A DNA stretch of 64,000 bases from contig CP075494.1 of assembly GCA_021613535.1 (NCBI GenBank), positions 8,618,001 through 8,682,000 on the forward strand, read 5' to 3'. Shown here one piece after another: positions 7,524 through 56,747 of this stretch (its first letter is position 1; each line of letters begins with the position of its first letter). This DNA comes from Adineta vaga. Its lineage: Eukaryota; Animalia; Rotifera. The position numbers and the translations under genes were made by a program. The notes beneath the pieces were generated by a model, which ran no database searches, was not told the origin of the DNA, and saw only the letters and a program-made list of their open reading frames with translations.

Positions 7524-8606
7524 TAAAACTGTTCAAAATGTCGCATTTCATCAACCGACATATAAAAATGAAATGAGTTATATTCAAATGGCATTTGGAA
7601 CACCGAAATAACTCCGTCAAAAAGCTTATATATTCGTAAATCTATGTGAGGGCGAGAATGTGATTAAGCATCAGCAATGACATATTCAACATCTTCATTT
7701 TCAATGTTTGATTTCTTCCACTTCTACTTTTTTTTCTGTTTTCTCAGTGATCATCTATAAAATATGAACAGTACCGCCATGATAACAATTTGCTAGTGAA
7801 TAAGAAGCAAGAGTTTTTCATGTGTTGAACTTTTTTGTATGTTGATTTATATAGACGTAATGCCTGATTATTATCTCTTGACCTTGTTCATTCAATTTGA
7901 AAGGAAAACAGAAACAATACGATGATTTCGAGGACAAGAAAACGTAAAAATGAATTTTTCTGCTGTCAAGCAAGATATTACCTTGAAAAATTGACTGTCT
8001 TTAATAAAAATCCGTTTGAATTTTTTTCTTCGTTCGAAAACGATTATTGTACTTATTATCGGTTGTTTTATATCAAAGAAATACTTCAATCGTTTGTCAT
8101 CGAACTAAGTCAACTTTAATTTTTCGATTTCTGTTTTCTTCGTCAAACAAGAAGGAAAGGAATACTGAGTAAATTTATTTTTGCATTTTGACAATATTCC
8201 GATAAAAGATAAGAAATATCTTCAAAGATTATTCTGAACAAAACAAAAGAAATCTTGCTAATAGTATTCTTCACAATCATTGGTGATATAATATTCGTTC
8301 TTCTCATATTATTTTAATCGACTTTTTTCCTATGGTGCTGATTGAACTTTCTTTTTCTCGGTTTTCTTTTGTAATCGTATTGCATTGAATGTATGGACAC
8401 TCGAGTTGCTAGCAATGACAGTAACATTTGTTTGATCATTATGCTTCCGAACACTATAATGCCCTTGTGCTGATAGCTAAAAGAGAAAGAGAGAGAGAGA
8501 GAGAACGAGAGAAGGAGACAAAGAACACATACACTTTTCTTTTTATTCTGACTGTTATTTCTTTCTTTAAAAACTGTTGTAATGCAGGTGAAAATCTTCT
8601 CTTGAT

Positions 8607-38379: not shown

Positions 38380-39180
38380 TCATTTGATTAATTGTCCTTT
38401 GACAGCATCTCTAACGAAAAACAATGGAATGGGTAGTTTAGTTAATTGATATTCTACTGTCGTATAAACTTGTTTCATTGAATCGAAATAGTTTGTTATT
38501 GGTTTAAATCGACAACCATCACCAACAATTGACCATATAGGTTCAATCATTCGTTGAAATCCATATATCGTTGGATTTGTTTCGTAATTAGCTGACATAT
38601 GTTCAAAAAAAAGAAATTTTCCACCTGCTTTTAATACTCGATGCGCTTCACGAAGTACTTTTTCTGGTAACGGATCAGGTACACTACATAAAACAAGTGT
38701 CATGATCACTGTATCCATACTATTCGATGGTATTTCGTACATATCAGTAGCAGAATCGTTCGATAGACGAATAGGAAATGGAATGTCTTGATATTGTTTA
38801 ATAAATTGATAAAAATATGGATAAGTATGAATATTTGGTTCAATACCAGTATACGAAAGAATATCTGTGTTATTATGGATACATGGAAAATTGATACCTG
38901 TACCAGAACCAATTTCTAAGACATGTCCTTTAACATTAGAATGTTTTAATAATTGATTACAACGAATATCCATAATAGCTGTATTGCTTGGATCAGAAAT
39001 TTGATTTAAAAATTTGGCAAAAACTATATAAAATCAAAATTAAAATAGTTGAAAAACAAAAAAATTTCATTTACATTTTTGTCGATGAACATCGTTGAAT
39101 TTTAAGTAGCCAATACCAATAGCAATTAATGCTACAATGATTGATAATGAACGAAATAGAAATTTAATACACCCACCCAT
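38380..39180 (-). CDS. METTL7/TMT1-like SAM-dependent methyltransferase, 2 exons
   Basis: Exon 1 MGGCIKFLFRSLSIIVALIAIGIGYL (membrane anchor); VLEIGSGTGINF, GIEPN, SMDTVIMTLVLCSV, RVLKAGGKFLFFEH, GDGC. Confidence 0.88.
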
Positions 39181-39263: not shown

Positions 39264-40098
39264 CAAAATCGTAATGATTAGAAGACGTTTTAAATTCTTC
39301 ATATCTTATATGAAAGTAAGAAAAAACAAACATCAATTATGACTCATCATTATTCAGAGATATACTGTATAAACACCATAATAAAAAGTAATTGTATGAT
39401 GAATTTCGATTTATTGTCAATAAACTAAATAATCATGTGAACGAGGGCGAATAGAATTCATATTGTTGTGATTTACTTTTTGTTTACATGTTTTCTAAAC
39501 TAATTGGAAATGATCAAATCATATATTGTATACAGAAAAAAAGAAATTTATCAATGTTCACAAACTCTTTAATAAACTTTTGATTATACATTAGTATAGT
39601 CAAGCGTTAAAATCAGTATACTGTATATCATTGTAGCAAACGTATAATCATCAATAGTATTACCAGAAATGAGTCATTTTATTCTTGTTATTTTTACAAA
39701 ATAAAATCGATTGACATATGAGAAACATATTCTATTCTATTCTATTACCATATTGTGTATATTTATAAATCGACAAAATCGTCCTCGAAAAAAATTGCTT
39801 TTGTATACAATCTTTTACAGGTATATTTGTTTGATTATAATGAAGAGCCGAACTACGTAATAATCATTTCAGCGCTACAGTCTATGTTAATCGATCCGAA
39901 CAAAAAAACAAAGTTTCTTTTAGATAGAATCATTAAGTAAATTAGTAGAATAGAAGAGTTGATATAATTTCAAAAAAGTATTGATTGGTTGATAGATTAC
40001 TCAAATCATATCAATTATCTGTACGCGTGTTGTTGGTTGGTTCATTATTTTCTTCACTTCTTATTTTTCATTGTCTCACGTCGACAAGGGTGTGGGTG
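39264..40098 (+). repeat. Direct duplication copy 1 of the METTL7/TBC1D9 intergenic promoter region
   Basis: Matches 51614-52450 apart from 3 substitutions I found by eye, one 5-bp TCTAT indel and a GGG insertion in the TBC1D9 ATG. Confidence 0.95.
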
Positions 40099-40674
40099 TT
40101 GGAAGGCAAAGAATAAAGAGAGAGTACCTGGGAGACGTTCTCTGTCTGCATACATAAAACACGTTACGATGGGTGAAAGAGACCGATTGGTCACACTCAA
40201 AGAAGCAGTTACATAATATCACTCACACGACGAACTACAACAGTTGTCTATAGGATATGTCAGAATCCTTAGAAGTTGAAGAAGAAGTGTAATACTCGAA
40301 TCGAATTAACGATTTCTACACTAATCATGGAAGAAACAAAATGAATACGAAGAGAGAATCGAAGGTCAACAAGCATCATCGCCAATTCAAGTCACTATGT
40401 CAATTGTACAAATCGGGAAGAGTATGTATAGAAAGAGAGACTTTTCAATACTCATCTTTTTGTTCGACAATATTTTTCAAAAGTTGTCATATATATTTCA
40501 ACCAACAGAAAATTCTGAGTAAATTAAAACACTTTGTCATAAAGATTATCTTTATTTTGCATCTGTAGGAGATCTCAATCTCATTAAAACTTCTCCTTTC
40601 TTCAAATCATCTTCACCTTAACAACATTAAGACGAAAATGTAGCGTACATTTGAAATATTATAGTCAGACTTGA

Positions 40675-41772
40675 CCCACGAGAAAATTTTTTTAGTAAAA
40701 CCGCTGATATCAGCGGTTTCTTAATGACACCGCGGATTTATGCAGCACACCGCGGTGTGATTTTATTAACCGGTGTTAGTGCCGGTTTTTTAGGACAGCG
40801 GTAGTAGCAAACCGCGATGTACCACCTATTGACCGCGGTCTCATATATTGCGGTTATAAGCGGTTTTACATACCGCGGTGTAGAAGTCAAGAACCGCGGT
40901 TTCATATATTGTGGTTATGAGCGGTTTCCTATGCCGCGGTGTGGAAGGCAATAACCGCGGTTTCATATATCGTGGTCATGAGCGATTCCGTATGCTGCGG
41001 TTTAGAAGTCACGAACCGCGGTTTCGTATTTGGCGGTTACGAGCGGTTTTGCATACCGCGGTGTAGAAGTTAATGAACGCGGTTTTCTTGTATTGCGGTT
41101 ATTACTGCTCTTTTAAACCGCGATGTAGCTGCCACAAACCGCGATTTCATCGTACTGCAGATTTTAGCGGTTTTTAAAAATCGCGGTGTGGATGCCAATA
41201 ACCGCGTTTTGATTAGAATGCGATTTACTAATTTACGAACGCGGTATATCAATCAAAAACTCAATGTGTAGTGACTTAGAGGATGTCGTGCCCTGCTTTT
41301 TCGTAACTTTTTGCACAAATTTTTTTGTGTGGCTCTATCATTGAGAAATGAAAGGAGTCTAATGGGACTTGTAAAGTTCTCACATCGCCCCTCGAAGGGC
41401 AACTCCTGTTGGTGGAGGGTGACTAGGTCACCACAGCCGGATTTTATGTGGATTCGGTTGTTTATGAAAAGTGTTGTTTTGATGCGGTATCTGAAAATAC
41501 GGTTTTTGGCGGTTTTCTTGAGCAGCGGTAGTCAGTCCGTTAATGAAGATGTCGAATACCGCCTCAAACTGCGGTTACTGACGTTTTTTTTCTCGTCGCG
41601 GAAGTCAGGCCTTTAATGAAGGTGCGAAAAACCGCAGGAAACCGCGGTTTGAGGCGGTTTTCAGTACCTTCATTAATGGTCTGACTTCCGCGATGAGAAA
41701 AAAAACGTCAGTAACCGCGGTCTCAAAAACCGCCAAATAGCGGCGGTATTTTGCCTTTTTTTTTCTCGTGGG
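40675..41772. mobile_element. Non-autonomous TIR transposon (~1.1 kb), CMC/CACTA-like, CpG-rich
   Basis: TIR CCCACGAGAAAA...TTTTCTCGTGGG, 2-bp flanking repeat GA, dense ACCGCGGT subterminal motifs, no transposase ORF. Superfamily is inferred. Confidence 0.8.
40832..41250. repeat. Diverged ~61-bp tandem repeat, about 7 copies
   Basis: Units start with (A)CCGCGGT variants at 40832, 40893, 40954, 41015, 41076, 41138 and 41201. Confidence 0.85.
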
Positions 41773-42927
41773 GAAGACGCAATCTTATTGTCTCGGAGAA
41801 AAATCCATTTAATTTATGATATATGAACAGAAGGTTTTCTCTAGTTAATTCTATCAGACGAACTATAGCTACGTCATTTTAGGCCCAAAGAGCATTCGTT
41901 CGTATGTGTAGTCAGTTCAGAGCCAAGTTTCCAATAGTTTCAGAATAGAATCTTGGAAAAACATGATTATTCATTATGTTCATTTGTTCTCTTTTCAGAT
42001 GTGATGGTAATGGTCCGCTGAATACTCCAAAACTTTTATAAATTAGTTTTTTTCATTTTTTTAAATAAAAATCAAAAAGAAGAATATTTGTGACATCACT
42101 GCTCGTTTGAATTTTAATTTATATTGAAGATTCTATCAAACGGAGAAATATTGTGTAAAAAATACCCATTAACTATTAAGTTATATGGAGAATATTATCT
42201 GCAATATGTCATCTCATTTCATGATAGATTATATTTTCGTCTTGTTTCAACGATCTAACATTGAATATTTTCATTCTGAATTATGCTCAAGAAACCAACT
42301 TGAGATAAAATTTTCTTTCCAAGTGCATGTATAACAAGATCATTAGAAAAATAAGTATTATATTAAAAAAATACAAATAATTTAGTTGAACACAGCTGAC
42401 TATTGAAGAAGTAGAAATATATCCTACGTTGCCCCACTTTCCTAGATTCTTCGTTCCTATAGAAAATTCATTGTCAAATATTTCAGTTTCAGCCATATCT
42501 AAAGAAAAATAAATGAATTATATGTCGAGGTAACAATATGAAAAAATGTAAATCTAGACAATCATTCAGAAAATCAATTTCATAAATCTGGTGAATGAAA
42601 CATCAAGAACAGGAGAATTAAACAAATGACAAGTACCTTTTTGCCGTTATACATTTTGAAACGATAGTTCAAAACTATGATTATTTAACGAATGAAACAG
42701 AATAAAACGATTTAAAGTTTAAAAATCTTTCGAAAAATATGAAAAATGTCAAGCGTAGGTTTTTGAAAAATTCAGACGGTCGTGAAATAATGACATCTGA
42801 AAGTTTGCTAGTGTTTTATGTACAAACATGTGCCGTTATTTCCTTATGACGGAATGGGTCAAATAGAATACATTTATACAAAAGAAGAAAGAATGGAAGT
42901 GAAGTAAAGTTAAAAATGGATTGTTCT

Positions 42928-43049
42928 CAAGGGGAAAAAGCGAGACTTCTACTCCGAAATACTTCGCGTACTTCACTGGTACTTCCATGTACTTCAGCCA
43001 TACTTCAAATACTTTTTGAAGTATTTGAAGTATCGCCTTTTCCCCCTTG
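42928..43049. mobile_element. ~120-bp MITE with internal TACTTC repeats
   Basis: CAAGGGGAAAAAGCGAGACTTC...GAAGTATCGCCTTTTCCCCCTTG imperfect TIRs; TSD unclear. Confidence 0.7.
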
Positions 43050-43111
43050 GACGTCTTAATTCAACTTCAACTTAATTCACTTTTTCTGTCTGTTTGAGCC
43101 CTTAAACAACA

Positions 43112-43174
43112 CGATTGACGCATTATGAGATAAATCATCTTTTTCAGACGATTTATCTCATAATGCGCCAATCG
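43112..43174. repeat. 63-nt hairpin, 29-bp arms, 5-nt loop
   Basis: CGATTGACGCATTATGAGATAAATCATCT-ttttc-AGACGATTTATCTCATAATGCGCCAATCG, 2 mismatches. Confidence 0.9.
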
Positions 43175-43395
43175 GACGTCATATTTCAGTTATATCGTTG
43201 ATTCACTTTTCTGTCTGTTTGACCCCTCAATCTTTAAAGAAAGAATATGTGCAAAGAAAAATATTCGTCTGATTTGAATATAACTGAGGCATTAGACAAT
43301 AAAAAGGGAAGCGAATCGGTATAATACTCATTTGTGTGTACATATCTGATCATTGTTGTGTAGAATACGGACAAACGAATTCATCTTTGCACACA

Positions 43396-44769
43396 ATGAT
43401 TACTACAACTTCTACTTGTGACAATACAACCTATCGTAAGACAAACTAAATTTCTAATAAATCAGCAAGATTTTCTTTCATTGTTGTTGAAATATTAGAC
43501 ATGAACTTTTCTTTTGCAATACTTTGTTGACAAATTATGAACATATAGTTTTGAAGAACTCAAGATAAAATTTTGTTTCATGTGCTTCAGATTCATAATG
43601 ATTTTGAGATACATCTATTTCATTTGCTTTTCTTGAAAAAAATTCAGTTAGTTACATATGTACGAGAGAAAATGTTCAGTCTCACTTGTAATATTATTCG
43701 AAAATAGTTCAGTTAGCAGAATTGTCGAATCCTTATTGTAATTCTATGAAAACTTTCTATATGAAAAAGTTTATTTTGTTAAAATTAGGCATTTGTGACT
43801 CTATGCTTTGTATTTATTATCTTTAAATGATTCTCTCTTTTATCATTTTAAAGAGCAGTTAAACCTCTGTTATTGTTTCTATTTTTCATCTTCGTTCTAA
43901 AAAAGAAAAGTAATCAAAGCAATACTTATAATCGAAAATCTATCTTATCATCATTGATTTTTATAGTTTATTGTATAACAATTATTAAGACTTGAAACAC
44001 TTTTCAATTTTTGAGATTCTTTTAAATGATAATTTCGTTTACTATATTTTATTTAGAATATATGGATATTTTACGTTGTCGAAGACAACGTCTCATCTTT
44101 CTTATCCAATGTTTCTTCTTCCTTCTCTTTTTTTCTATTGGTTGTGGGTGTGGAATAGTTCATACACTTGATGATTGTTTTCAAGGTACATGTTATTATA
44201 ATACACAAGCACGTTCAGATAAACTTCAAACAACTTCAATCAACCATTGTTCTGATATTACAAATCCAGTTTGTTTTCGTCAAACACATATTAACAATCA
44301 CTTTTTCAAAGTTAGATTATTTGTTCTTTATAATGTGTCAGTTATCATTAGCATGGTTTATGCATGGCATCGTACTGTTCGTTTGTTAACTTGTCTTTTT
44401 GTTTTATCTGTTATTACTTTTATCCTTTTTTGTACTGATCTCATTCTTTATGTTGATGAAGTATTTGATAAAAGTCTGATGGTAACTCTTGGCACTATCA
44501 TCAGTTTTCCAATACTAACGTCATATTTAGCCATCGATAACGAAGATCCGTTAAGTGTGATCTGTGGATACGACAGAATAACAAATGGTCTTCACGAATT
44601 TCTTCTCAATGATAATGCGAAACGTGCGCGTTTTTATCGATGGGCAAAAAAAGTGATGAAACAATGGAATATTAAAGAAGAGAAGTTAATTATATCGATT
44701 ATTTTCATCATAATGATTGACATTTTATTGATGCTTGTAACTGTTTATGTCTTACCTTTCATGCCGTAA
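43396..44769 (+). CDS. Uncharacterised multi-pass membrane protein with a Cys-rich loop
   Basis: Long open exon 44057-44769 with about 5 hydrophobic segments; probable first exon 43396-43435 (MITTTSTCDNTTY, GTAAG donor, phase-compatible). Confidence 0.6.
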
Positions 44770-45488
44770 GAATACAAAAACAACGTTTATAATTTTAAGA
44801 CAAAAATATGAAGACATTATATATAGATCATATGAATACATACAAGTTTTATACAGATGTTTGGTGTGACTTCGGCACGACATATATAAATAAATAAATT
44901 TAATAAAACTTTGATTCATAATTATTCGAAACATGCCTACATTGTTTTTTTTTAAAATTGTATCACCGACGTTTTATACAATTGCTTAGGAGTCAAAAAG
45001 AAAGTGTGAATATAAAGAAAGCAAAAGCCGTTTAAAGTTTTTTTCGAAATGATGCGTTTCATAACAGATAAGACTTATAACACAATTCTAAATCTGTCAT
45101 TTAACTGAAAAAACTATTGAACGATATTCTCTATTGATCTTTTCAGCTCCCAAAAAGTTTCTGATACTTTGGCTCATGTAAATGATAACGTTTATTCAAA
45201 AATATGAATATGTTACCGATAGACGTTAGCGTATAGTGATCTTTATCTCATTGTCAAAGTTTATCATCACATGATACACACCAACCCTCATCGATACTCG
45301 ATCATCATTCTTATTGTAATGTTTGCCATCAGCTGGTTGTAGTTCGAAATTTGTTGAGAAGAAACTCTTGGATGAATATTTTTTTCGGAAGAACAAGGTG
45401 AAGTTGGAGAAATAACATGTAGATTTGGTTAATCTATCATTTTCATAGATTTTCAAATAATTTGATTCTCTTTTTCAAATATTTTTAG

Positions 45489-46570
45489 TTGTAGTTTAGC
45501 ATTACTTCTATCAAAAGTTCGCGAAACCGTTTTAATCTTAAGTAGCGATCCAGCTCATAATATATCAGATGCATTTAATAAAAAATTTACGAAAAAATCA
45601 ACAAAAGTCAATGGTTATGATAATCTATTTGCTATGGTTTGAACAATTTTGTTTAAATCTCTTCTTTCTTTTGATGAATTATATAAATTTCATAGGAATT
45701 TGATCTATCTGGTGGAATTAGTGAATTACCCAAGGGGGAAACAGCGGATCTGGGATTGTCGGACTTTTTTTTTGGATTGGCGAATTGTGTTCGGATTTCT
45801 CATGGATTGGCAATCCCAAAAATCTGCCGTTTCCGTCTTGGAAAAATCTGACGATAATGAAGAAAGTGATATGAATTTATCATTTAAAAAAAAGAAAAAG
45901 AAATCTTTATAATATTATTATTTTAGAATTATGGACTGTATGGTCGTTCAATGTTTCAAGAAATGCTTCCATCATTTTCTGGTATTGATGAAATAATAAT
46001 AATGAATTAGATTATTTAGAAATATGAATTTTAGTTTCGTTGTAGTTGATACCGCGCCAATAGGTCGTACATTACGATTACTTTCATTTTCTTCAGCTAT
46101 TGAAAAAGGTCTTGATAAAATTTTAAGACTCAAAAATCAAGTTGAACCAATGTTAACACAAGTAAAGAGATTGTTTTATTATTTTAAATATTCTTTATTT
46201 TTTCCTATTTCAAAAGATTTCATCAGTGTTTGGTATGGATAATATGATGTCAGAATACAAGAATTATCTAAATGTCATATAGATACACATTCAATTATTG
46301 TTAATCAAGTTTTATTTCCAACACCAAGTGAAAATATCAATTCATGTTCTTGTTGTGCATCAAAAATGCGTCTTCAACAGAAATATATTGAACAAGTATT
46401 TTTTTATTTGGAATTTATATCTTTTTTTTTACTTTATATTTTGATTTAGATTGATGATCTTTACGATGATTTTAATGTTGTGAAATTACCATTTATTTAT
46501 GATGAAGTTCGAGGTATACAAAATATCAATTCATTTTCTCAACATCTTATGAAAAATGCAATATAAACCA
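45489..46570 (+). pseudogene. ASNA1: ASNA1/GET3 ATPase unprocessed pseudogene, 5'-truncated
   Basis: [76 protein letters not shown]. No GKGGVGKT P-loop exon; frameshift, stop, internal deletion, MITE insertion; introns retained. Confidence 0.88.
45730..45841. mobile_element. ~110-bp MITE inserted in an ASNA1 relic exon
   Basis: CCAAGGGGGAAACAGCGGAT...ATCTGCCGTTTCCGTCTTGG imperfect TIRs, internal GGATT repeats; interrupts GGISEL/KSDDNEE. Confidence 0.72.
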
Positions 46571-46994
46571 CAAATATTTCATTATCAGACAAACAAAAGT
46601 TGCTCATTTTTATTTTTTTATTTAAAGTTGATCTTCTATTCAAAAGGCGAAGAATAAAACAATTATTTGTTTCAAAACGATAATATTTAAAGTAAATCTA
46701 CTAGAAAATCGAACATTTAGCTTTCGAAGACAAACGATACAAATTGGAAATAAATATATTGTTTATTTCAATCGATAATTTACAGCATGAAGAATATCTA
46801 TTTGATGAAAATCTAATCAATTTTCAAGAAGATAATGAAGTTCATTCGATGAATATTTCTAATTCTAGATGTTCTTAATCGAATAAAAAAAAGTAATTTT
46901 ACATACATTTGCTTTCATATTTGTTAATATTTCTCATGGAAGTTGCAACGAATTTTTTAAGTTGATTTCAACGGTCATAGGGTGTTTGGGAAGT

Positions 46995-47547
46995 CACTAA
47001 ATACAGAAAAATTTGAAGATTCTTCTCATTTGACAACCACACAGGCATAATTTTCCGAAGATATAGGTTCGGTGGAAGTTTTTATTCATGAGGAACCAAT
47101 CTTTATGTGTGCATGGTATACTGATCAACTCTGTTCACCGCATAAGTAGATTGTCAACAATCATTTGTTACTCATAGTTATAGATGGATACTGTGGGATA
47201 TTCTTTTAATTTATCTATCAAATAATATAGATCATATGCAATACAATATTTACGAACATGAAAGAGAAATCGTTCTTTATTGTTCAAATAATAGGAAAAC
47301 GTTGCATATCGTCTATTTCGTTCGATAAATAAACGAAAAAATATCCTACAGTATCTATCTATAACTATGAGTAACAAATGATTGTTGACAATCTACTTAT
47401 GCGGTGAACAGAGTTGATCAGTATACCATGCACACATAAAGATTGGTTCCTCATGAATAAAAACTTCCATCGAACCTATATCTTCGGAAAATTATGTCTG
47501 TGCGGTTGTCAAATGAGAAGAATCTACAAATTTTTCTGTATTTAGTG
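46995..47547. repeat. Long inverted repeat, 208-bp arms (46995-47202 and 47340-47547), 137-bp spacer
   Basis: Arms are reverse complements with about 6 mismatches counted by eye. Confidence 0.95.
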
Positions 47548-48505
47548 GCATTTCAGACATCATATAAATACGAATTTACGGATGTCATTCATACAGGATA
47601 TCTTTCAGCTACATAGGAAATATATGGGACAATGATTTTTAGGTACAATAGCTTTCAAGTCTAATAAATTTCGCAAGTTGCAGCGATATTGGAAACTACA
47701 GTCTCGTTTTTACATATATATTTAATGAACTAGGCAACAACCATATTTCAATTGTTTAAACAATTAGATGATGAAATGATAAAGTTTTCCAAATAAATAA
47801 TACGATTTATTTATGATCAATTCATTTCCAACTTTTTTTTCCTTACATGGACAAATCGTAGATATATATATATATGTATAATTCATTTTCAACTATTTCA
47901 TATAAATATATTGATATAAAGATGAAGATAAACGGAATCAAACTAAATAAACATCCAACAAAATCTTTTTGATTTACATATCACAAAATGAGGTTCCCTC
48001 TGTTTTTCTTTTAAGCAGCCGTGTATCTCTACTTTTGGTCATTTCACAATGAATCATTTTCTTGTGTGCAACGTGATCGTCACGAAGCTCTTTGTTTTTT
48101 TCTTCTCGTGGTTCTCTCTCTATGGTTTAATCTGTGTGATTTTCCTTCTCTCTCCCAGTATTGTTATCTATGGTCCTTTTTCGTTCGTTCTGTTGCCACA
48201 TATATTTCTTCCATTTATGTCTGTTGGTGTAGAATGTCTCGTGTCTTTCTTTTTGTTTTTGTTTCGTGAACAGATATTACCGTTCACTACTAATGGACGG
48301 AGATGTTAGGGAATTATACTACTATACACTAGCTAGCAATCTCTTTGGTTTTCTTCTCTTTTCTCTATTCATTCTTTTTCTTTTTCTTTCTTTGTCGCAT
48401 CTCTTTGTAGTAGTTTCAATTGGAGAAGAAGAATTTTTCTGTTGATCTTTGTCTGTTCGAATTTAAATTATATTTTTAATTGATTTTTTCATGTTTTTTT
48501 TTCAG

Positions 48506-49177
48506 ATGGCGGAAGATAATGATTTTGAAAAAATACTAGAAAAATTTAATATCGATCGATATACTTTATCTTTGGTCAGTTGGATTTTGAAGATTGGAAG
48601 GATTTTCGACAAAATTCAGCAATTGACTAAATCTAGTTCTTATCGGTTAATTATTGTAATTTCATGTTATGTTATTTTCAGTTATTATTTGACATCTATG
48701 GTGAAGTCGTATAATTCTTATATGCATTCATTTGACAAATATCAAGAAATGGAAAACAATTTGAAAAGTTTAACACAAAATAATCTTACGAATAAATTTA
48801 TCGAAGATCCACTTCTGTTCTATGGAAAGATGCATTAGGTTAATGGAAATTATTCACGAATTTTAAAGTTGATGGTTAATGATATACATTATGTTAAAAT
48901 TCATAATGTTCATCTGGATGATTTTCTTTCGAATGGGACGAAACTTAGTTTCATAATTACTTGCTTCCCTTTCGTGCTGAATACTCCTTGGTGGACAAAT
49001 ATTTTATCTATTTTTATTGGTTTATCGAATATGATTGCATCGCAACAGAACTTCGTTTTTCAATACCTGTATCTGCTGCTGTCAAATATTGTACTTGGAG
49101 AAGTTTTATTGGTTGTAACTGAAGTCAAGTTTTGGTTAAGTGCATTTGGGGCACTGATCAAGGCTAAAACTTTGTAA
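48506..49177 (+). pseudogene. Membrane-protein-like frame interrupted by one in-frame TAG
   Basis: ORFs 48491-48838 and 48869-49177 share a frame; only TAG 48836-48838 separates them; TTTCAG acceptor just before MAEDND. Confidence 0.5.
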
Positions 49178-49310
49178 TAAAGATTATGTTTTCGCCATTT
49201 TTTACTTTTCACATGATCAAATCAGGAAAATGTTTGGTAAAAGAAATAAAAAAGAACTGAAAGAAATTTTATTATTCTAAACATAATTTTTTTATGAAAA
49301 AATTCTTTTA

Positions 49311-51530
49311 GGATTTACAAGATGAAAATGATCAAGAAGTAAATAAAAATTGAATTTTTTTTCCCTATTAAAATTATTTGTTTTAACTTAGAATCGATAT
49401 TTACTTGAAGATGAAAAAAAGAAAATGAAACGAAAGAAAAGAAAAATGAAAATGAAGTTAAAAAATGAATATCAATTCGTACTGAACATTTATTAAATGT
49501 AATACTGACAAAAACTACACTTGATCTTGTTCAAAGAATTTCTATAATGTTTAATGAACTTTATTCAAAAGATCTTCCATCAGATATTGATGAAGAACAC
49601 GTTATGTTATCTATTCATAATCAAACTGGTTTTGATATAATTATTTATGAAATTCAAGGTATTCAATTTCGAAAGAATGAAGAACCTGAAGATAAAAAAA
49701 TACATTTAAAAACAAATCAATCAATTCAATTAACAATATTTGAAGAACGTTTATCAGCAACACATTTACCAGCTGTTTCTGAACAATTTTGAAAAAGAAA
49801 ACAACACTTTTATGTTTAATTTGCTGATAATACGATTTTAGTTAATATTAATCAAACATGGAGAAGAGTTTATGAGTGTGCATCATCACCAATTCCATCA
49901 TGGCCAATTCAATTACTTTGTGATTCATAAAAAATGAAAGAAGAAAAGATATCCTTAGTTTAATTATTAAAGTAATTTTATTCATTTCTTTTTAAAAACA
50001 AATTTTCTTATTTTAAGGTTTCAAATCGAACACAAATGCCACTAATTCTCTTAGATGCTGATTCATTGAACAAAATCAATTTAATTCCATTACAAAAATT
50101 GATGTTAATCAAGAATTTTATCTTCCTATTCAACTTCTTTATTTACGAACAACATCACGCCTTTATTTTACAGTTGATCAGTAAGAAAAATTTTTCTTTT
50201 CAAAATTTCTCATTTTTTTTTTCAAAGAGGAAATTCTTCAGATTTTATTTCATTTGATTAGGTTAATGATTCATCAAGTGATAGAATATTAAAATTAAAT
50301 GATGGAAGACAAGCACATTATGTTGTATGTTTTTTCTTATTTATTGAATTTTCATTTCTCTTGGTTTTTATTAAAAGATTTATAAAGAAGAAATTGAAGC
50401 ATATTCAGAAAATACCGATGAACCAAATACAATTGATTTAAATATTAAAGGACATGGAATTCATAATGAACATATGATTGAATTTACGAATTTATCAAAT
50501 GAAGCAATATTAGTAAAAGAAAGTAATAATAAGATAAAGACTTCTTTCTTCTTTTTTTAGAGAATGATTTTACGTACTGACATATATAGAGAGAATCATA
50601 TCGTGTTTCATATTATTCACCATTTTGGATTATTAATGGAACTGATTTATAATTTCAATTTAAAGTTTGTTGAAAAATGAAATTATTATTGGGTTTTTTT
50701 AAAGAAAACATTTTTTAGATTGATAATGGTAAAACTTTAATTGATGTTGGTGATAATCCATTTTTTATTCGTCCAAAAAAATTTGATAGTGATTCACATA
50801 AAAAGAAAGGACATATTAGATTATTTTATAATGACGAAGATGAAACAATTTCACAATGGTCGGAATCATTTTCACTTGATGTTATTAAAAGTACTATGGC
50901 TTCATGTAAAGTTAATAATGATAGAACTTATACAATTTGTATTGATATTGTTACTTCATCATTTAGTATGACGAAAATTATTACTTTAATTCCATCAACT
51001 GCTATTTATAATAATTCGTCTGTAATCATTTAAAAACAAGATTTCATTGAATAAAATTTTCTTTTTTTAGTTACCAATTCAAGTGTCAGAATTTAATTCG
51101 GATTCTTCACAATTAGAATGAAAATCAATTAAATCAGATAAAGTAACTAGAAATCTTTCTAGGACGTTAATTCCTATCGGCAGACACGACAGTGTCAAAC
51201 GGGTCCGGCGGAGATCCACACATAAATGAGTAGCGAGAACTCGAAGTTTTTGTCTCATTTACGCTAGACATCGATGAGTCGTAAAATGTAGGAGAGACGA
51301 GTAGATGACCGTATTGTTCATTATTTTTGATATAACGGATTACGAAACGCTGTAATTTTTAATCTTTTCTTTAGGTTGAATCTTAATGGCCACGTTCATT
51401 AGAAGAAACAAAAATGTTAGTTCGTTATGAAACTAATTCCAAAGCAAGTTTATTTTCAATTGAAGACAAACAACGAATATTATTACATATGAATAATGAT
51501 GAAGATTCTGCACTTCATACTGAAGATGAG
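49311..51530 (+). pseudogene. VPS13: VPS13(A/C-like) internal fragment, unprocessed pseudogene
   Basis: LNVILTKTTLDL, SIHNQTGFDI, YSPFWIINGTDL, SQWSESFSLDVI, IDIVTSSFSMTKIITLIP match the VPS13 central adaptor-binding region; many stops and frameshifts; introns retained; both ends missing. Confidence 0.8.
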
Positions 51531-51613
51531 GTTTAAAACCTCGAAAGCTCTATTTTATTAGTAATTTTCATATAAAAATAAATCGTCAACTTTTATCAAA
51601 TTTCATCAATATT

Positions 51614-52450
51614 CAAAATCGTAATGATTAGAAGACGTTTTAAATTCTTCATATCTTATATGAAAGTAAGAAAAAACAAACATCAATTATGACTCATCAT
51701 TATTCAGAGATATACTGTATAAACACCATAATAAAAAGTAATTGTATGATGAATTTCGATTTATTGTCAATAAACTAAATAATCATGTGAACGAGGGCGA
51801 ATAGAATTCATATTGTTGTGATTTACTTTTTGTTTACATGTTTTCTAAACTAATTGAAAATGATCAAATCATATATTGTATACAGAAAAAAAGAAATTTA
51901 TCAATGTTCACAAACTCTTTAATAAACTTTTGATTATACATTAGTATAGTCAAGTGTTAAAATCAGTATACTGTATATCATTGTAGCAAACGTATAATCA
52001 TCAATAGTATTACCAGAAATGAGTCATTTTATTCTTGTTATTTTTACAAAATAAAATCGATTGACATATGAGAAACATATTCTATTCTATTCTATTCTAT
52101 TACCATATTGTGTATATTTATAAATCGACAAAATCGTCCTCGAAAAAAATTGCTTTTGTATACAATCTTTTACAGGTATATTTGTTTGATTATAATGAAG
52201 AGCCGAACTACGTAATAATCATTTCAGCGCTACAGTCTATGTTAATCGATCCGAACAAAAAAACAAAGTTTCTTTTAGATAGAATCATTAAGTAAATTAG
52301 TAGAATAGAAGAGTTGATATAATTTCAAAAAAGTATTGATTGGTTGATAGATTACTCAAATCATATCAATCATCTGTACGCGTGTTGTTGGTTGGTTCAT
52401 TATTTTCTTCACTTCTTATTTTTCATTGTCTCACGTCGACAATGTGGGTG
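51614..52450 (+). repeat. Direct duplication copy 2; upstream region and start codon of TBC1D9
   Basis: Matches 39264-40098; contains a reverse CCAAT box (GATTGG, ~52338) and the intact ATG at 52442. Confidence 0.95.
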
Positions 52451-55400
52451 AAACCATCTGAAATTTTAGTAAATGATTTCATTTTTTTGAAAACTAAACG
52501 AAATCTAAAACAATGTTTTTCTTTTTTTCTTTATAGGTCAATGGATTTTGGTAAATATATTGTTTAAACTCGACTTTTCTATTTGACTTTCAATAGGTCT
52601 ACTGATCGTGCAAATCCTTATTTTTCATTACAACGTCGTCGAGGTCATGATGAAAAATATGCTGGACTGACCAGTATGTTGGTCGCGACACTCGATTCTG
52701 TATTTGACAGCAAAGTAAGAAAATACAATTGTTGTAAATATTTATTTATGACTCTTCTTTTAAGACTAATCGTTATCGTATTCTTCATCAACGACCTGAT
52801 TCAGAAGTTTACCATTGTAAATAGAAATGAAATTGAAAATCGAACCTTCAATAGTTTTTCACATCTAGTAATTGCTGAAGCAGATACTAAAGAAGAGATT
52901 GAAGAACATTGGCAATGGCTTGAAGAAAATTTAATGCCTGCACTTGGTAGAATAGTCGTCTTCTTAGAATTTTATTAATTTCGACTGATATTTATAGGTA
53001 AAATTGATGCTGGAGTTGATGTAACAGAATATGTTCAATCAAAAATCAAAAGTTTATGTGAACAAGTGGATGAAGATGAAATTGGTGGTAAAAAATAATC
53101 AGACGATGATTACTTTCGTATATCGTGTCTCTATATATATATATATATCTAGATTTTGAATCGGATAAATTTAAAAATGCCGTAAAAAAATTTCATAAAT
53201 TCAATGTTCCAGCTGATGAAAAACTTGTCACATGTACGTTAAAATCTCTGCATAGATTCTATCGATTTTAGTTCGTTTTTGTTCAGATTATGCTTGTTCC
53301 TATTGGCGCGGTCGTGTACCTCGTCAAGGTTGGCTGTATTTATCGGTGAATTATTTATGTTTTTATTCGTATTTACTTGGCAAAGATATTACGATTGTAT
53401 TAAAGTTTACAGACATAACTGTACGTGAGAATTGTACCTTCGATGGTGAGATTTAGAATTGATTTTGTTATATATTGTAGTCATTGGAACGTATACAAGC
53501 ATATGTAGCTGAAACAATACGTGTTGGTACACGATTTCATGTACATGATTTTTCGATGTTTCGAAATATTGAAGAAACATATCAAATGATGGAACAATTG
53601 GCTAATTTTGCAGCGAAAAAGTAGTTTACATTAAGATTCGATCGATTAACGTTGATTATGTCTTTAATTTTCGATAGATTATTATCGGAAAAAGGTGCTT
53701 TTCGTGAAGAAGATTTCTTTCCAGCAGTTACAAAGTATGTGTATGTGTGTGTGTGTTTTCTCGATTACAAATTGTTCAGAATATCTATTTAGAAAAACTG
53801 CACCGAAAGTTATCTCTCAATTAAAACGTGATCTAGATGCGAAAACACGTAGTGAACTCTATCGTTGTCGATTTCGTCTACCCTTAACTGAACGATTAGA
53901 TGGAGAAGTTTCATGTCATCTATGGACACCTTATAATCAGTCTCATGTTTCGGGTACACTTTATATATCAAATAATTTCGTCTGCTTTGCTAGTCGAGTA
54001 AGATTTCGAAACTTGGATTAAACAAAAAGATGTCGATTGAATGAATAGGTTCATCATCAAGTGAATTTAATCATTCCATTTCGTGATATCAATGTTATTG
54101 AGAAGAAACCAGATCATTTGAAAGTACCTGATATTCCAATTGACTCAGCAATATCGATGACCATAAAACAACAAGTAAACTTTTCAGTGAGATGAATGAG
54201 AATAGTTTTATGTGTTTATTACAGGAAAGAAAATTGATTTTTTCTTATTTGGATGATCGAGAATTTGTTTTGAATAAGCTAGTACAGATATTATCACAAT
54301 ATAGTGAACCGCAATCACCAAATATCGATCTAACACATATTGGTAAGTCATTTTTATCAACGTTTTTCTACCAATTAAAAAGTCATCTTTCTTCTAGAAA
54401 TTTCCCCTCCACTCTATTTACAATTCAATACTAATTATAGTGACGAACGTTTAGCACTTGAAAAACTTAAAGAAGCATCATGGCATACACATTTTCTAAC
54501 TCATGGAAGAGGTTCAACAATATATCGAACGAATGAATTATATGAATTAATATTTCAAGGTATACCTGATTCATTACGAAATGAATTATGGTTAATATTT
54601 AGCGGTGCAATACATGATGTAAATAAATTCGAATAAAACAAAACATTTGAATAACTACATTCATCTTCTTTAGAAAGCAGCAAATCCAAAAATTTATTTA
54701 AAATTAGTTCATGAATCATCACTAATGAAAACTGGTCATGAATCAACTAATGATGAAATTGAACGTGATCTTTATCGAGCATTACCTGATCAAAAAGCTT
54801 TTCAACATGATTCAGGTATAAGTGCATTACGAAGACTATTGAGAGCATATGCTTGTCATAATACTGATGTTGGTATGTCGATCTTCTTCATAATCAAACA
54901 GTTTTGTTTTCTTCGAATGAGAAATATTTAGGTTATTGTCAAGCAATGAATATTATCGGAGGAGTTTTGTTACTTTATATGAACGAAGAAGATGCATTTT
55001 GGACATTAGCAGCTCTTTGTGAACGTCTTTTACCGGATTATTACAATACGAAAGTTGTTGGTGCATTGATTGATCAAGGTAAAGATATTTATTTTCGAAT
55101 CTATTTATTTTGTTTGCGCAATATTTTCTTATAGGTGTTTTCAGTGATTATTGTAGCGAATATCTACCTGATTTATATGATCAATTGAAAAATCTTGGCG
55201 TTGCTGCTTGTATAAGTCTTTCATGGTTTTTAACATTGTTTATTTGGTACGAACAAATCAAATTTTGTCACTTTCTCTAATTAACTTTCCTTGTAGTGTT
55301 ATGCCTTTTAATTCTGCACTCTACGTTATGGATATATTTTTCTATGATGGAATTAAAGTTCTTTTTCAACTAGCATTAACCATATTAAAAGAAAATCAAG

Positions 55401-56747
55401 AAAGTCTATTACAATGTCAAGATGATGGTGATGCAATTATGGTATTAACAAATTATTTAGATGGAATAACGGATGATAATGATAAAGAAAAGAAAATCGT
55501 CTATTTAATAAAACAATCTTACATGAATTATAATGGTATTAATGAAGAAGATATCAATCGTTTACGTTTAAAACATCGTTTGAAAGTAGTACAAAACATG
55601 GGTGAAACAATTTTACAATCAGCAGCAAAGAATACATTGAAATATACATTATTTACAGAAGAACAGATCAAAGATCTTTTTTATGTTTTTCGAGTAATAT
55701 TTAGCAGAAAAGTATCGATGAAAAAAAATGAATTTATTAATCTAGGATGCGTCACGTTTATCCTTGAGTGAAACAAGTGATCCGAGAAAATTACCTTATG
55801 AAACATATCGTATTGGTCGAACTGAATATCTTCTTTTATGTAAATATTTGTTACCATGGTTTGTTGGTGAACATCCTGAAGATTTAGCAAATACATTATT
55901 TGATGTAAATATAAAAATGAATGTAAACTTGATTTGAATTGCTTTTGTTTTCTCGGATAGGGATTTTGTATGACAACAAATTCAAATGAAATGGATTTTA
56001 TTAGTTTTATTCGTTTATGGAATATTTTATTAAATGAAGAATTTAAAGAGAAATTAAAACTTTTATTTATTATACATCTTAAAGGTTAGTGTATAAAAAT
56101 GACGAATATTTATCAAGAAAAATTGTATATTTAGACGAAAAACGACGAAAAACAGCAATAATTAGTTTATTAGAATCATCTACAGTTCAGTCAACATCCA
56201 TAAGTTTTCGTCATAAACCAGAAGAACCAATTGTACCTAGTGAAGCGGATTCAACATCAGTTGAAACAGAACAAGAACAAGAACAAGAAGAAAATCTTAA
56301 ACCTAAATCAAGTCAATTACCATTGATGAATCAGGTACGTGTATATACGTAAATACAATAGAGAATCAATCTATGCAAATAATTCGTCTTTATTTTAGAC
56401 GGAATTTATACAATTATGTAAATCAATGTACAATTTAATGACAGGTGATGTTGATGATGAAAATCTCTTTCGAGCATTGACAACATCGAGTACAATTCTT
56501 TTAAAAACCGGTCGGCTTTTTCATAATCATGATGATCTTTATTCTCATTTTTTTTTCAGGTGAAATGAGTAGACCTTACCGTCGATTAGAAACCGATGAA
56601 ACAACAAATGAATGGACACTTAGTTTTGAACAATTAGAAGCAGCTATGAATGCTGAATCATCTATAGTTACATGGTTTGAATCCAATAGTCAACAGCAAT
56701 CTCTTGAACAACGTATTCATAATTACAATCAAGATTTTCTTCATTAA
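52442..56747 (+). CDS. TBC1D9: TBC1 domain family 8/9 Rab-GAP (two GRAM domains, TBC), multi-exon
   Basis: MWVKPSEIL|VNGFW|[17 protein letters not shown]; [19 protein letters not shown]; [11 protein letters not shown]; catalytic EIERDLYR and GYCQAMN; [21 protein letters not shown]. Confidence 0.94.

Follow-up and report, generated by a model that had tools for sequence, protein, structure and literature searches.

An interstitial island of old DNA between duplicated promoters in Adineta vaga looks like a scar of chromosome-break repair

Background

Bdelloid rotifers withstand massive chromosome breakage. Additions of Athena and Terminon elements and neotelomere scars at broken bdelloid ends were reportedly described by Gladyshev and Arkhipova in 2007. 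Such additions and scars at bdelloid breaks are treated in PMC6431247, PMC8557442 and PMC13564844. The tails of Athena/Terminon elements join G-rich 3' overhangs (PMC8557442, PMC6431247), deletion breakpoints in Adineta vaga carry telomeric repeats and Athena fragments (PMC13564844), and recent work proposes a temporary capping of broken ends with telomeric repeats and Athena-type elements, "leaving only scars" (PMC13564844). Tandem duplications, in turn, arise by fill-in of complementary 3' protrusions (PMC8355091).

The locus described here looks like a chromosome-break repair scar that is recent on an evolutionary scale. As such it would be a concrete, fixed scar in a reference genome, in which the product of repair can be compared directly with an internal copy of the target as it was before the break. 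It would display the positions of the break ends, a telomere-like coding motif at one tip, imported old DNA with an intact gene, and a 0.8-kb duplication supplying a promoter to both neighbouring genes. This is one locus only, and we infer the key steps of its history.

Results and Discussion

Within the window, by which we mean the whole 64-kb stretch of DNA analysed, an 11.5-kb island is bracketed by direct repeats at positions 39264-40087 (A1, the left promoter copy, 824 bp) and 51614-52442 (A2, the right promoter copy, 829 bp, whose last base is the A of the TBC1D9 ATG), both delimited by repeat alignment and a genome-wide copy search and neither assigned a strand. The island lies in mid-chromosome, at 8.66 of 16.93 Mb, where the arm is dense in genes. 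Alignment of 39264-40098 with 51614-52450 covered 832 positions with three mismatches (39507, 39605 and 40016), together with one 5-bp indel (an ATTCT unit) and one 3-bp indel (GGG). The copies are 99.6% identical (0.36% divergence), and the mismatches are evenly spread without a gradient. Only two copies of the promoter repeat were found when the whole 100.8-Mb A. vaga assembly was searched, which bears out the near-identical direct repeats reported in the initial annotation. The match does reach the repeat ends given there (40098 and 52450), but the promoter homology proper stops at 40087 and 52442; the last eight matching bases, TGTGGGTG, belong on the left to the telomeric tail of a retroelement and on the right to codons 1-3 of TBC1D9.

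The left neighbour, previously called METTL7-like, is a two-exon class I SAM methyltransferase gene on the minus strand (I4U23_024665; 38383-39180; Pfam Methyltransf_11; 100% match to P0001) that is single copy in the genome and has its ATG at 39180, 84 nt outside A1. The right neighbour is a TBC1D9-like gene with GRAM and TBC domains (52442-56740, plus strand; ATG at 52442), whose exon 1 opens ATG TGG GTG and contains the same 8-mer as a native telomere-like motif. Its homoeologue on chromosome 2 (dN/dS ~0.17) encodes a protein beginning MWL, and human TBC1D9 presumably begins MWV, as the TBC1D9 of this locus does. Removal of the island and one repeat copy leaves the two genes head to head, as had been claimed, approximately 0.9 kb apart, and this is the pre-event state. 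The target duplication is direct and abuts the insert on both sides, with coding and promoter continuity restored on each. Since insertion alone would part the A of the TBC1D9 ATG from the TG, the insertion and the duplication are best explained by a single event.

An assembly or haplotype artefact, in which the order of repeat, island and repeat does not exist on one molecule here, would account for the same arrangement. The assembly collapses a diploid genome with 1.7% heterozygosity into a haploid sequence (PMC13564844), and the repeat copies differ at a sub-allelic level. However, an assembler can output the two seams only if real reads contain them, the left seam is biologically meaningful and sits on a matching target motif, and the window contains no Ns; we consider an artefact highly improbable.

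Island DNA is single copy in the assembly, and no match of at least 95% identity, and hence no donor copy, was found anywhere in it. The island ends read GGGTG... and ...AATATT and show no more terminal repeats, inverted or direct, than chance would give, which rules out a TIR, LTR or Helitron element and agrees with the reported absence of LTR- and Helitron-type ends. The further statement that transposase and reverse transcriptase (RT) are missing agrees with a scan of ten island ORFs, which gave zero matches to either. A transposable element with a target-site duplication was rejected because the island is single copy and has no defined termini, and the earlier suggestion of an unrecognised gene-capturing element, understood as a mobile family, is not supported on these grounds and because there is no RT. 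Capture mediated by a retroelement tail is still part of the best model.

The most informative feature of the locus, absent from the initial annotation, is a telomere-tailed retroelement end on a native telomere-like motif. At the island's left seam, the 3' tail of the retroelement forms the telomeric repeat GGGTGTGGGTG (40088-40098, plus strand), which comprises 1.8 units of TGTGGG, the A. vaga telomere motif (PMC13564844, PMC7943196). This 11-nt sequence is the sole exact copy in the 64-kb window, where 0.04 would be expected even with one mismatch allowed. The retroelement itself (40099-40331, sense on the minus strand), defined by a seven-copy alignment viewed on the sense strand, is short, non-autonomous and of the type that attaches to telomeres. 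It measures ~240 bp with its tail; a conserved 5' module of ~60 bp is followed by a variable middle and then by a 3' module that ends in the reverse-complement telomeric tail, the sense strand terminating in ...CCAACACCCACACCC; five of the seven aligned copies have this tail. The 5' module occurs at least 40 times across all six chromosomes, with many copies within ~2 Mb of assembled ends and several internal.

Neither the ~240-bp retroelement nor the ten scanned ORFs yielded an Athena-clade RT, and an element of this length with a fixed 5' end and no RT match can be at most a non-autonomous passenger. Rfam searches for a hammerhead gave no match within the window (E up to 0.01) or the six other copies (E up to 1), and the CUGANGA core was not found in any retroelement copy, although a diverged minimal motif would escape. 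No telomeric tract was found at the right seam, and no long flank duplications were seen around other retroelement copies; these absences, like that of a hammerhead by the tail, count against the break-repair model preferred below. The nearest relative of the seam element's 3' module is just 75% identical, so the element may be old cargo and not a fresh addition; against this view, its 5' module differs from the family consensus at 2 of 59 positions.

The left seam falls where the undisturbed copy has TBC1D9 ATG TGG GTG. Telomere-type 8-mer sites number five in the window, so such a site falls within 0-3 nt of ~4e-4 of positions. The seam reads CAA-GGG-TGTGGGTG-TTGG and priming from ...CAATGTGGGTG predicts CAATGTGGGTG-TTGG, a 3-nt offset from the simplest priming prediction that also counts against the preferred model. 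A telomere-like 8-mer on the minus strand at 39169-39176, where the methyltransferase gene starts, was considered as the second break site and rejected because it falls 88 nt beyond the edge of the duplication.

Telomere-type microhomology at the left seam, in a junction made of a duplication with an insertion at the breakpoint, would also fit template switching of the MMBIR/FoSTeS type. The 3' end of a broken fork at the TBC1D9 start would invade a telomeric-repeat tract elsewhere by microhomology, copy 11.5 kb and return to a point 0.83 kb upstream, and the outcome would be a tandem duplication that contains a templated insertion; a possible weak microhomology (CAA..ATC) between the right seam and the VPS13 paralogue is in keeping with this course. 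However, the template expected at ~99.6% identity is missing from the assembly and the 3-nt offset is likewise unexplained, and we regard template switching as improbable.

Sequence comparison shows the cargo to be an old, decayed paralogue of distal-arm sequence on the island's own chromosome. A decayed paralogous block at 43237-49174 (plus strand) is colinear with chromosome 5 15,889,455-15,900,477 by blastn and tblastx, and spliced gene models were searched one exon at a time. Although the island had been described as a gene-fragment island, the open frame at 44026-44769 (plus strand) is an intact, rotifer-specific gene for a 247-codon multi-pass membrane protein (ORF247), conserved in its family alignment: relative to its paralogue it has zero indels, a dS of 0.34 and a dN/dS of 0.70, and it retains every invariant residue of its family. 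The ASNA1/GET3 pseudogene (45343-46968, plus strand), aligned to the functional copy at C5:15884197-15886057, has a destroyed P-loop, a 115-bp insertion and two deletions removing exons. An internal fragment of a VPS13 gene (49388-51560, plus strand) matches C5:16051556-16053917 at 78% identity, is frameshifted in many places and stops ~50 nt short of the right seam. Both relics had been named before and are present by Pfam (ArsA_ATPase and the VAB domain, respectively) and by paralogue alignment. Their description as intron-retaining holds mostly, not fully, since ASNA1 keeps its intron positions but VPS13 is without exactly one 59-bp paralogue intron. Two supposed orphan frames at 48467-49174 proved to be a single frame, split by one stop at 48836-48838, in a decayed gene (48245-49174, plus strand) with a weak paralogue at C5:15899761-15900477.

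One TIR element was confirmed where three had been claimed, a multi-copy MITE-like element (40677-41775, unstranded) with inverted termini CCCACGAGAAAA... and ...TTTTCTCGTGGG, 61-bp tandem repeats inside and a palindrome close to its 3' end; the other repeats are two small palindromes (42997-43036 and 43112-43174). A long hairpin, a feature also noted earlier, is a unique inverted duplication (46977-47565, unstranded) with 230-nt arms that are 94% complementary and no other genome copy. Rfam and tRNA scans of the island returned spurious plant-miRNA hairpin matches on inverted repeats and nothing else, ruling out tRNA or 5S genes as the short high-copy repeats.

All cargo genes are antisense to the left-seam retroelement, so their introns would stay unspliced in a read-through RNA. 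This orientation would suit a single long reverse transcription of an 11.5-kb read-through RNA with a telomere-type tail, a 5' transduction on the scale of Terminons, which extend up to 40 kb (PMC6431247), and the island's left limit is the exact 3' tail of the retroelement. Such an origin is nevertheless very unlikely: the assembly holds no donor, no RT gene or hammerhead lies nearby, and the right end carries no telomeric repeats as a 5' cap.

On chromosome 2, the homoeologous locus has a GPCR gene and TBC1D9 with other genes between them and lacks the island, which points to an insertion and not an ancestral spacer; ASNA1, VPS13 and ORF247 were not found at that locus. An in-place ohnologue relic was rejected for the same reason and because the divergences do not fit, homoeologue dS (0.85-1.8) being well above the relic dS of 0.34. 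Genome-wide BLAST of the cargo, which the initial annotation had proposed as a check, returned the single-copy island and decayed paralogues on chromosome 5. From these paralogues the cargo differs by a dS of 0.34 (ORF247) and by ~22% in non-coding sequence, with the ASNA1 and VPS13 relics ~20-22% diverged and rich in indels. Compared to the flank duplication (0.36%), the cargo is thus roughly 70-90 times older and had already diverged by ~22-34% when divergence of the flanks set in, in line with the earlier observation that the relics are far more decayed than the flanks. The one assembled chromosome end inspected lacks a terminal telomere tract, indicating that the true chromosome ends are unassembled. 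A metagenome scan found a single 1.7-kb contig, too short to include a neighbour.

It is also conceivable that the insertion is about as old as the relics and that recurrent gene conversion has homogenised the two promoter copies. A. vaga frequently undergoes gene conversion and loses heterozygosity (PMC13564844), the three mismatches show even spacing and no gradient, and the cargo, the MITE and possibly the retroelement appear older than the flanks. However, holding 824 bp at 99.6% across 11.5 kb over a dS of ~0.3 demands sustained conversion, the now-redundant halves of both copies show no decay, and single-strand annealing between the repeats should presumably delete the island where breaks are frequent. 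An insertion of that age is quite unlikely.

With moderate confidence, we favour break repair with fill-in: a staggered break would have been filled in, duplicating the promoter, while its G-rich 3' tip engaged a retroelement with a telomeric tail and DNA that was already old was taken up. The single-copy island, the chromosome 2 locus without it and the contrast in divergence uphold the initial view of old DNA inserted together with an unusually long flank duplication; repair of a break is the most probable origin. The two strands would have been cut ~0.83 kb apart, the top at the TBC1D9 start and the bottom 84 nt upstream of the methyltransferase ATG, leaving two ends with complementary 3' single-strand protrusions; the 0.8 kb melted between the nicks is far above the lengths studied in PMC8355091 and counts against the model. 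The G-rich 3' tip of the left end, which resembles a telomere overhang, may then have engaged the retroelement with the CACCCA tail, in one of two forms: an RNA that an Athena-type reverse transcriptase copied, or a piece of DNA ending in that tail. Because the assembly holds no donor copy, any copy-type step needs a source that is unassembled, hemizygous or lost. The remaining cargo, possibly DNA of subtelomeric type that had already aged and whose source has been lost or is missing from the assembly, would have been joined on, the right protrusion filled in and the ends ligated. With both protrusions filled in, the promoter would be duplicated and each gene would keep one copy, which is probably the reason that the event survived.

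A broader reading is that telomere-like motifs within genes, such as that encoding the MWV start of TBC1D9, act as landing pads at which, in bdelloids, the machinery of telomere-attaching retroelements heals interstitial breaks and imports subtelomeric kilobases; this idea is tentative and rather doubtful. Imports into gene-dense regions would then include a working gene, and long fill-in duplications would keep the neighbours regulated. If true, landing pads would offer an asexual, desiccation-tolerant animal a general means of relocating genes and duplicating promoters.

Comparison with known systems

As in Athena/Terminon additions, the reverse-complement telomeric 3' tail of an element is joined to a G-rich 3' end and pieces of host genes adjoin the element, in the same species that carries the breakpoint scars. 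Unlike those additions, the locus is interstitial, has no RT, hammerhead motif or far-side telomeric cap, and records an event that rejoined the chromosome while duplicating 0.82 kb of target. Fill-in duplications (by CST-Pol alpha-primase, PMC8355091, or at paired nicks) share with it the direct duplication of the exact stretch between the cuts, a right seam without clear microhomology and room for inserted filler; however, the duplications in PMC8355091 are small, compared to 824 bp with an 11.5-kb insert and telomere-like sequence at one tip here. R9 provides a further parallel, as a bdelloid retroelement inserted between unusually long target duplications. While R9 is site-specific, endonuclease-bearing and multi-copy with a fixed duplication, the insert described here is a single-copy mosaic, and its flanking duplication is ~6.5 times longer than that of R9.

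A duplicated promoter enclosing a single-copy island

The assembly searched in this study comprises 100.8 Mb in six contigs, with the window at positions 8,618,001-8,682,000 of chromosome-scale contig 5, and is a haploid reference of this bdelloid rotifer in which the homologous haplotype is not represented. Local alignment of 39264-40098 with 51614-52450 covered 832 positions and showed 3 mismatches, one 5-bp indel of an ATTCT unit and one 3-bp GGG indel, bearing out the initial annotation of these segments as near-identical direct repeats, and a whole-genome search identified only these two copies of the duplicated promoter segment. The enclosed island (40088-51613) is single copy, with no portion matching elsewhere in the assembly at ≥95% identity. 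Stretches found only in the island include 40332-40655, 41776-42900 and 47566-48200. An assembly artefact is considered very unlikely. Deletion of the island and one promoter copy leaves, as previously proposed, a head-to-head pair of methyltransferase and TBC1D9 genes, with about 0.9 kb between them. The methyltransferase gene (38383-39180, minus strand) has its ATG at 39180, 84 nt beyond the left copy, while TBC1D9 starts at 52442 in the right flank (ATG TGG GTG AAA CCA ..., then a GT donor). The duplication left each gene a full promoter copy, which plausibly accounts for the event having survived.

The methyltransferase is identical to Adineta vaga I4U23_024665, and orthologues of it are encoded on contigs of 205 kb and 1.7 Mb from A. 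steineri and A. ricciae. Its nearest non-rotifer relatives, at about 35-41% identity, are class I SAM methyltransferases of Bacillales (Sporosarcina, Neobacillus), and the genome contains no homoeologue of it. The gene appears to have been acquired horizontally and not to be an orthologue of METTL7.

Content and age of the island

The island begins with a short element and 345 bp of unique DNA, followed by a 1.1-kb MITE (inverted termini, 61-bp internal repeats, 90-93% identical to other copies), two small palindromic repeats, a paralogous block (43237-49174) colinear with chromosome 5 positions 15,889,455-15,900,477 and, last, a 2.2-kb internal fragment of VPS13 that is 78% identical to chromosome 5 positions 16,051,556-16,053,917. 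The two source regions are found on the chromosome that carries the window (16.93 Mb), about 1 Mb or less from its end. Their order and orientation match those in the island, the spacing being 151 kb there and about 0.2 kb in the island.

The description of this DNA as a gene-fragment island with intron-retaining relics holds in part. The ASNA1 copy is a clear pseudogene (P-loop lost, 115-bp insertion, exon deletions) and the VPS13 piece contains many frameshifts; most VPS13 introns are kept, but one is absent. The ORF at 44026-44766 (247 codons) is intact, and the island is therefore not purely fragments. All residues that are invariant in a rotifer-only family of membrane proteins are retained in this ORF, and its N-terminus is better preserved than that of its paralogue. 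The two orphan frames described initially are actually one frame with a single stop, with a weak paralogue at the colinear position. The public gene model I4U23_024667 (339 aa; 44026-46560, plus strand) is a chimera, fusing parts of the intact membrane-protein ORF to ASNA1 pseudogene exons. At 49667 a single 59-bp intron of the paralogue (7836-7894 of assembly excerpt L006) is missing exactly from the VPS13 relic, with the adjacent introns kept, reflecting either precise loss in the relic or gain in the paralogue.

In the distal-arm paralogous region, the 3' part of functional ASNA1 has recently been duplicated in inverted orientation, with identical translated exons (C5:15,884,754-15,885,035, minus strand, L005:4754-5035; C5:15,895,089-15,895,427, plus strand, L008:5089-5427), and between the two copies lie a non-LTR RT fragment and large TE-like ORFs. 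At C5:16,041,491 (L010:7491) an interstitial telomeric repeat, TGTGGGTGTGGG, precedes the VPS13 paralogue by about 10 kb, consistent with a source region that is seam-rich and of subtelomere type.

The flanks differ from each other by 0.36% plus two indels, compared to about 20-22% raw divergence (introns and flanks counted in) between the ASNA1 and VPS13 relics and their paralogues, in agreement with the earlier observation that the relics are far more decayed. The intact ORF has a dS of 0.34 from its paralogue (dN/dS 0.70), and homoeologous genes on chromosomes 5 and 2 have dS values of 0.85-1.8. By these comparisons the cargo is a post-tetraploidy duplicate, and its age, barring homogenisation of the flanks, is some 70-90 times that of the flank duplication. 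An old insertion whose flanks were kept alike by concerted evolution is considered unlikely.

The chromosome 2 homoeologue contains the GPCR gene and TBC1D9, with other genes intervening, and neither the methyltransferase nor any island gene was found there. Though not an empty site, it argues against an ancestral island. In the chromosome 2 GPCR-TBC1D9 interval (C2:9,600,983-9,604,356; L007:4983-8356), four other ORFs replace the methyltransferase, one of them head to head with TBC1D9; the two homoeologous spacers were apparently remodelled independently. Placing the island at CAA|TGTGGGTG without duplication would break the ATG of TBC1D9, so insertion and duplication are most simply one event.

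A telomere-tailed element at the left seam

Promoter homology stops at ...GTCGACAA (40087 in the left copy, 52442 in the right). Past this point the right copy reads TGTGGGTG, codons 1-3 of TBC1D9, and the left copy reads GGGTGTGGGTG, then TTGGAAGGCAAAG.... The telomeric repeat of bdelloids is TGTGGG (PMC13564844, PMC7943196), and the 11-mer telomeric repeat at the seam has one exact occurrence in the 64-kb window, with 0.04 expected even at one mismatch. The following 240 bp or so (40099-40331) belong to a dispersed family. Across seven aligned copies, one end is formed by a strongly conserved module of ~60 bp with sharp boundaries and the opposite end by another module; in five of the seven, the second-end module is followed by the same telomeric tract as at the seam. 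In minus-strand orientation the element is short: its 5' end is fixed, its middle is a variable stretch of tandem repeats and its 3' end reads ...CCAACACCCACACCC. Its 5' module recurs on all six chromosomes, in at least 40 copies, of which many are close to assembled ends. Athena and Terminon retroelements attach to G-rich 3' overhangs through reverse-complement telomeric repeats at their own 3' ends, a hallmark of these elements (PMC8557442, PMC6431247). The hammerhead motif found with this tail in genuine Athena and Terminon elements was not detected, nor is there an RT, and the element is therefore classed as non-autonomous and telomere-attaching in kind rather than as an Athena member.

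As read in the undisturbed right copy, the left seam falls on a native telomere-like 8-mer set by MWV, the N-terminus of TBC1D9. Human TBC1D9 presumably also begins MWV, and the chromosome 2 homoeologue begins MWL (ATGTGGCTT). Telomere-phase 8-mers occur at just five sites in the window, and about 4e-4 of positions have one 0-3 nt rightward; the placement of the seam on the motif is taken as a mechanistic link rather than chance. Of the four natural telomere-like sites in the window (the island's own tail excluded), two sit at the start codons of the genes that flank the duplication. The methyltransferase start, ATG GGT GGG TGT, has its 8-mer on the sense strand (39169-39176, minus), 88 nt outside the duplicated segment.

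In one detail the seam departs from the simplest model of priming: extending ...CAATGTGGGTG would produce CAATGTGGGTG-TTGG, whereas the actual sequence is CAA-GGG-TGTGGGTG-TTGG. The offset could reflect trimming of the tip to CAA and then an end-to-end template jump, or a later conversion from another element copy; the chromosome 3 copy of the element shares these 19 nt. Pure template switching is unlikely as an account of the whole locus.

Proposed repair of a staggered break

Two strand cuts 0.83 kb apart would yield the observed geometry, in which the same segment borders the insert on either side and continues as in the native locus into each outer gene. The left fragment would then carry a top-strand 3' protrusion with the telomere-like motif at its tip, and the right fragment the complementary bottom-strand protrusion. 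Filling in both and joining the ends would duplicate the promoter, a demonstrated source of tandem duplications, at much smaller size (PMC8355091). The G-rich 3' tip, the substrate of telomere-attaching elements (PMC8557442), would engage such an element, and the remaining cargo may be a captured DNA fragment, a copy of an unassembled or hemizygous subtelomere, or one long cDNA. A single long reverse transcription as the source of the island is quite improbable. No donor copy of the island is present in the assembly, from which the true chromosome ends are absent, since the right end of chromosome 4 (C4:15,214,635-15,224,634; L025) stops in unique AT-rich sequence with no terminal telomere tract.

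We somewhat favour a telomere-element-assisted break-repair scar, in which a staggered break was filled in and pre-aged DNA was captured. The proposal in the initial annotation that old DNA was inserted by break repair with a long flank duplication is supported and sharpened. The locus, so far a single one, would gain in interest if the idea of telomere-like landing pads proved general. At some deletion breakpoints in A. vaga, telomeric repeats and Athena fragments were observed and interpreted as transient neotelomeres that left scars (PMC13564844).
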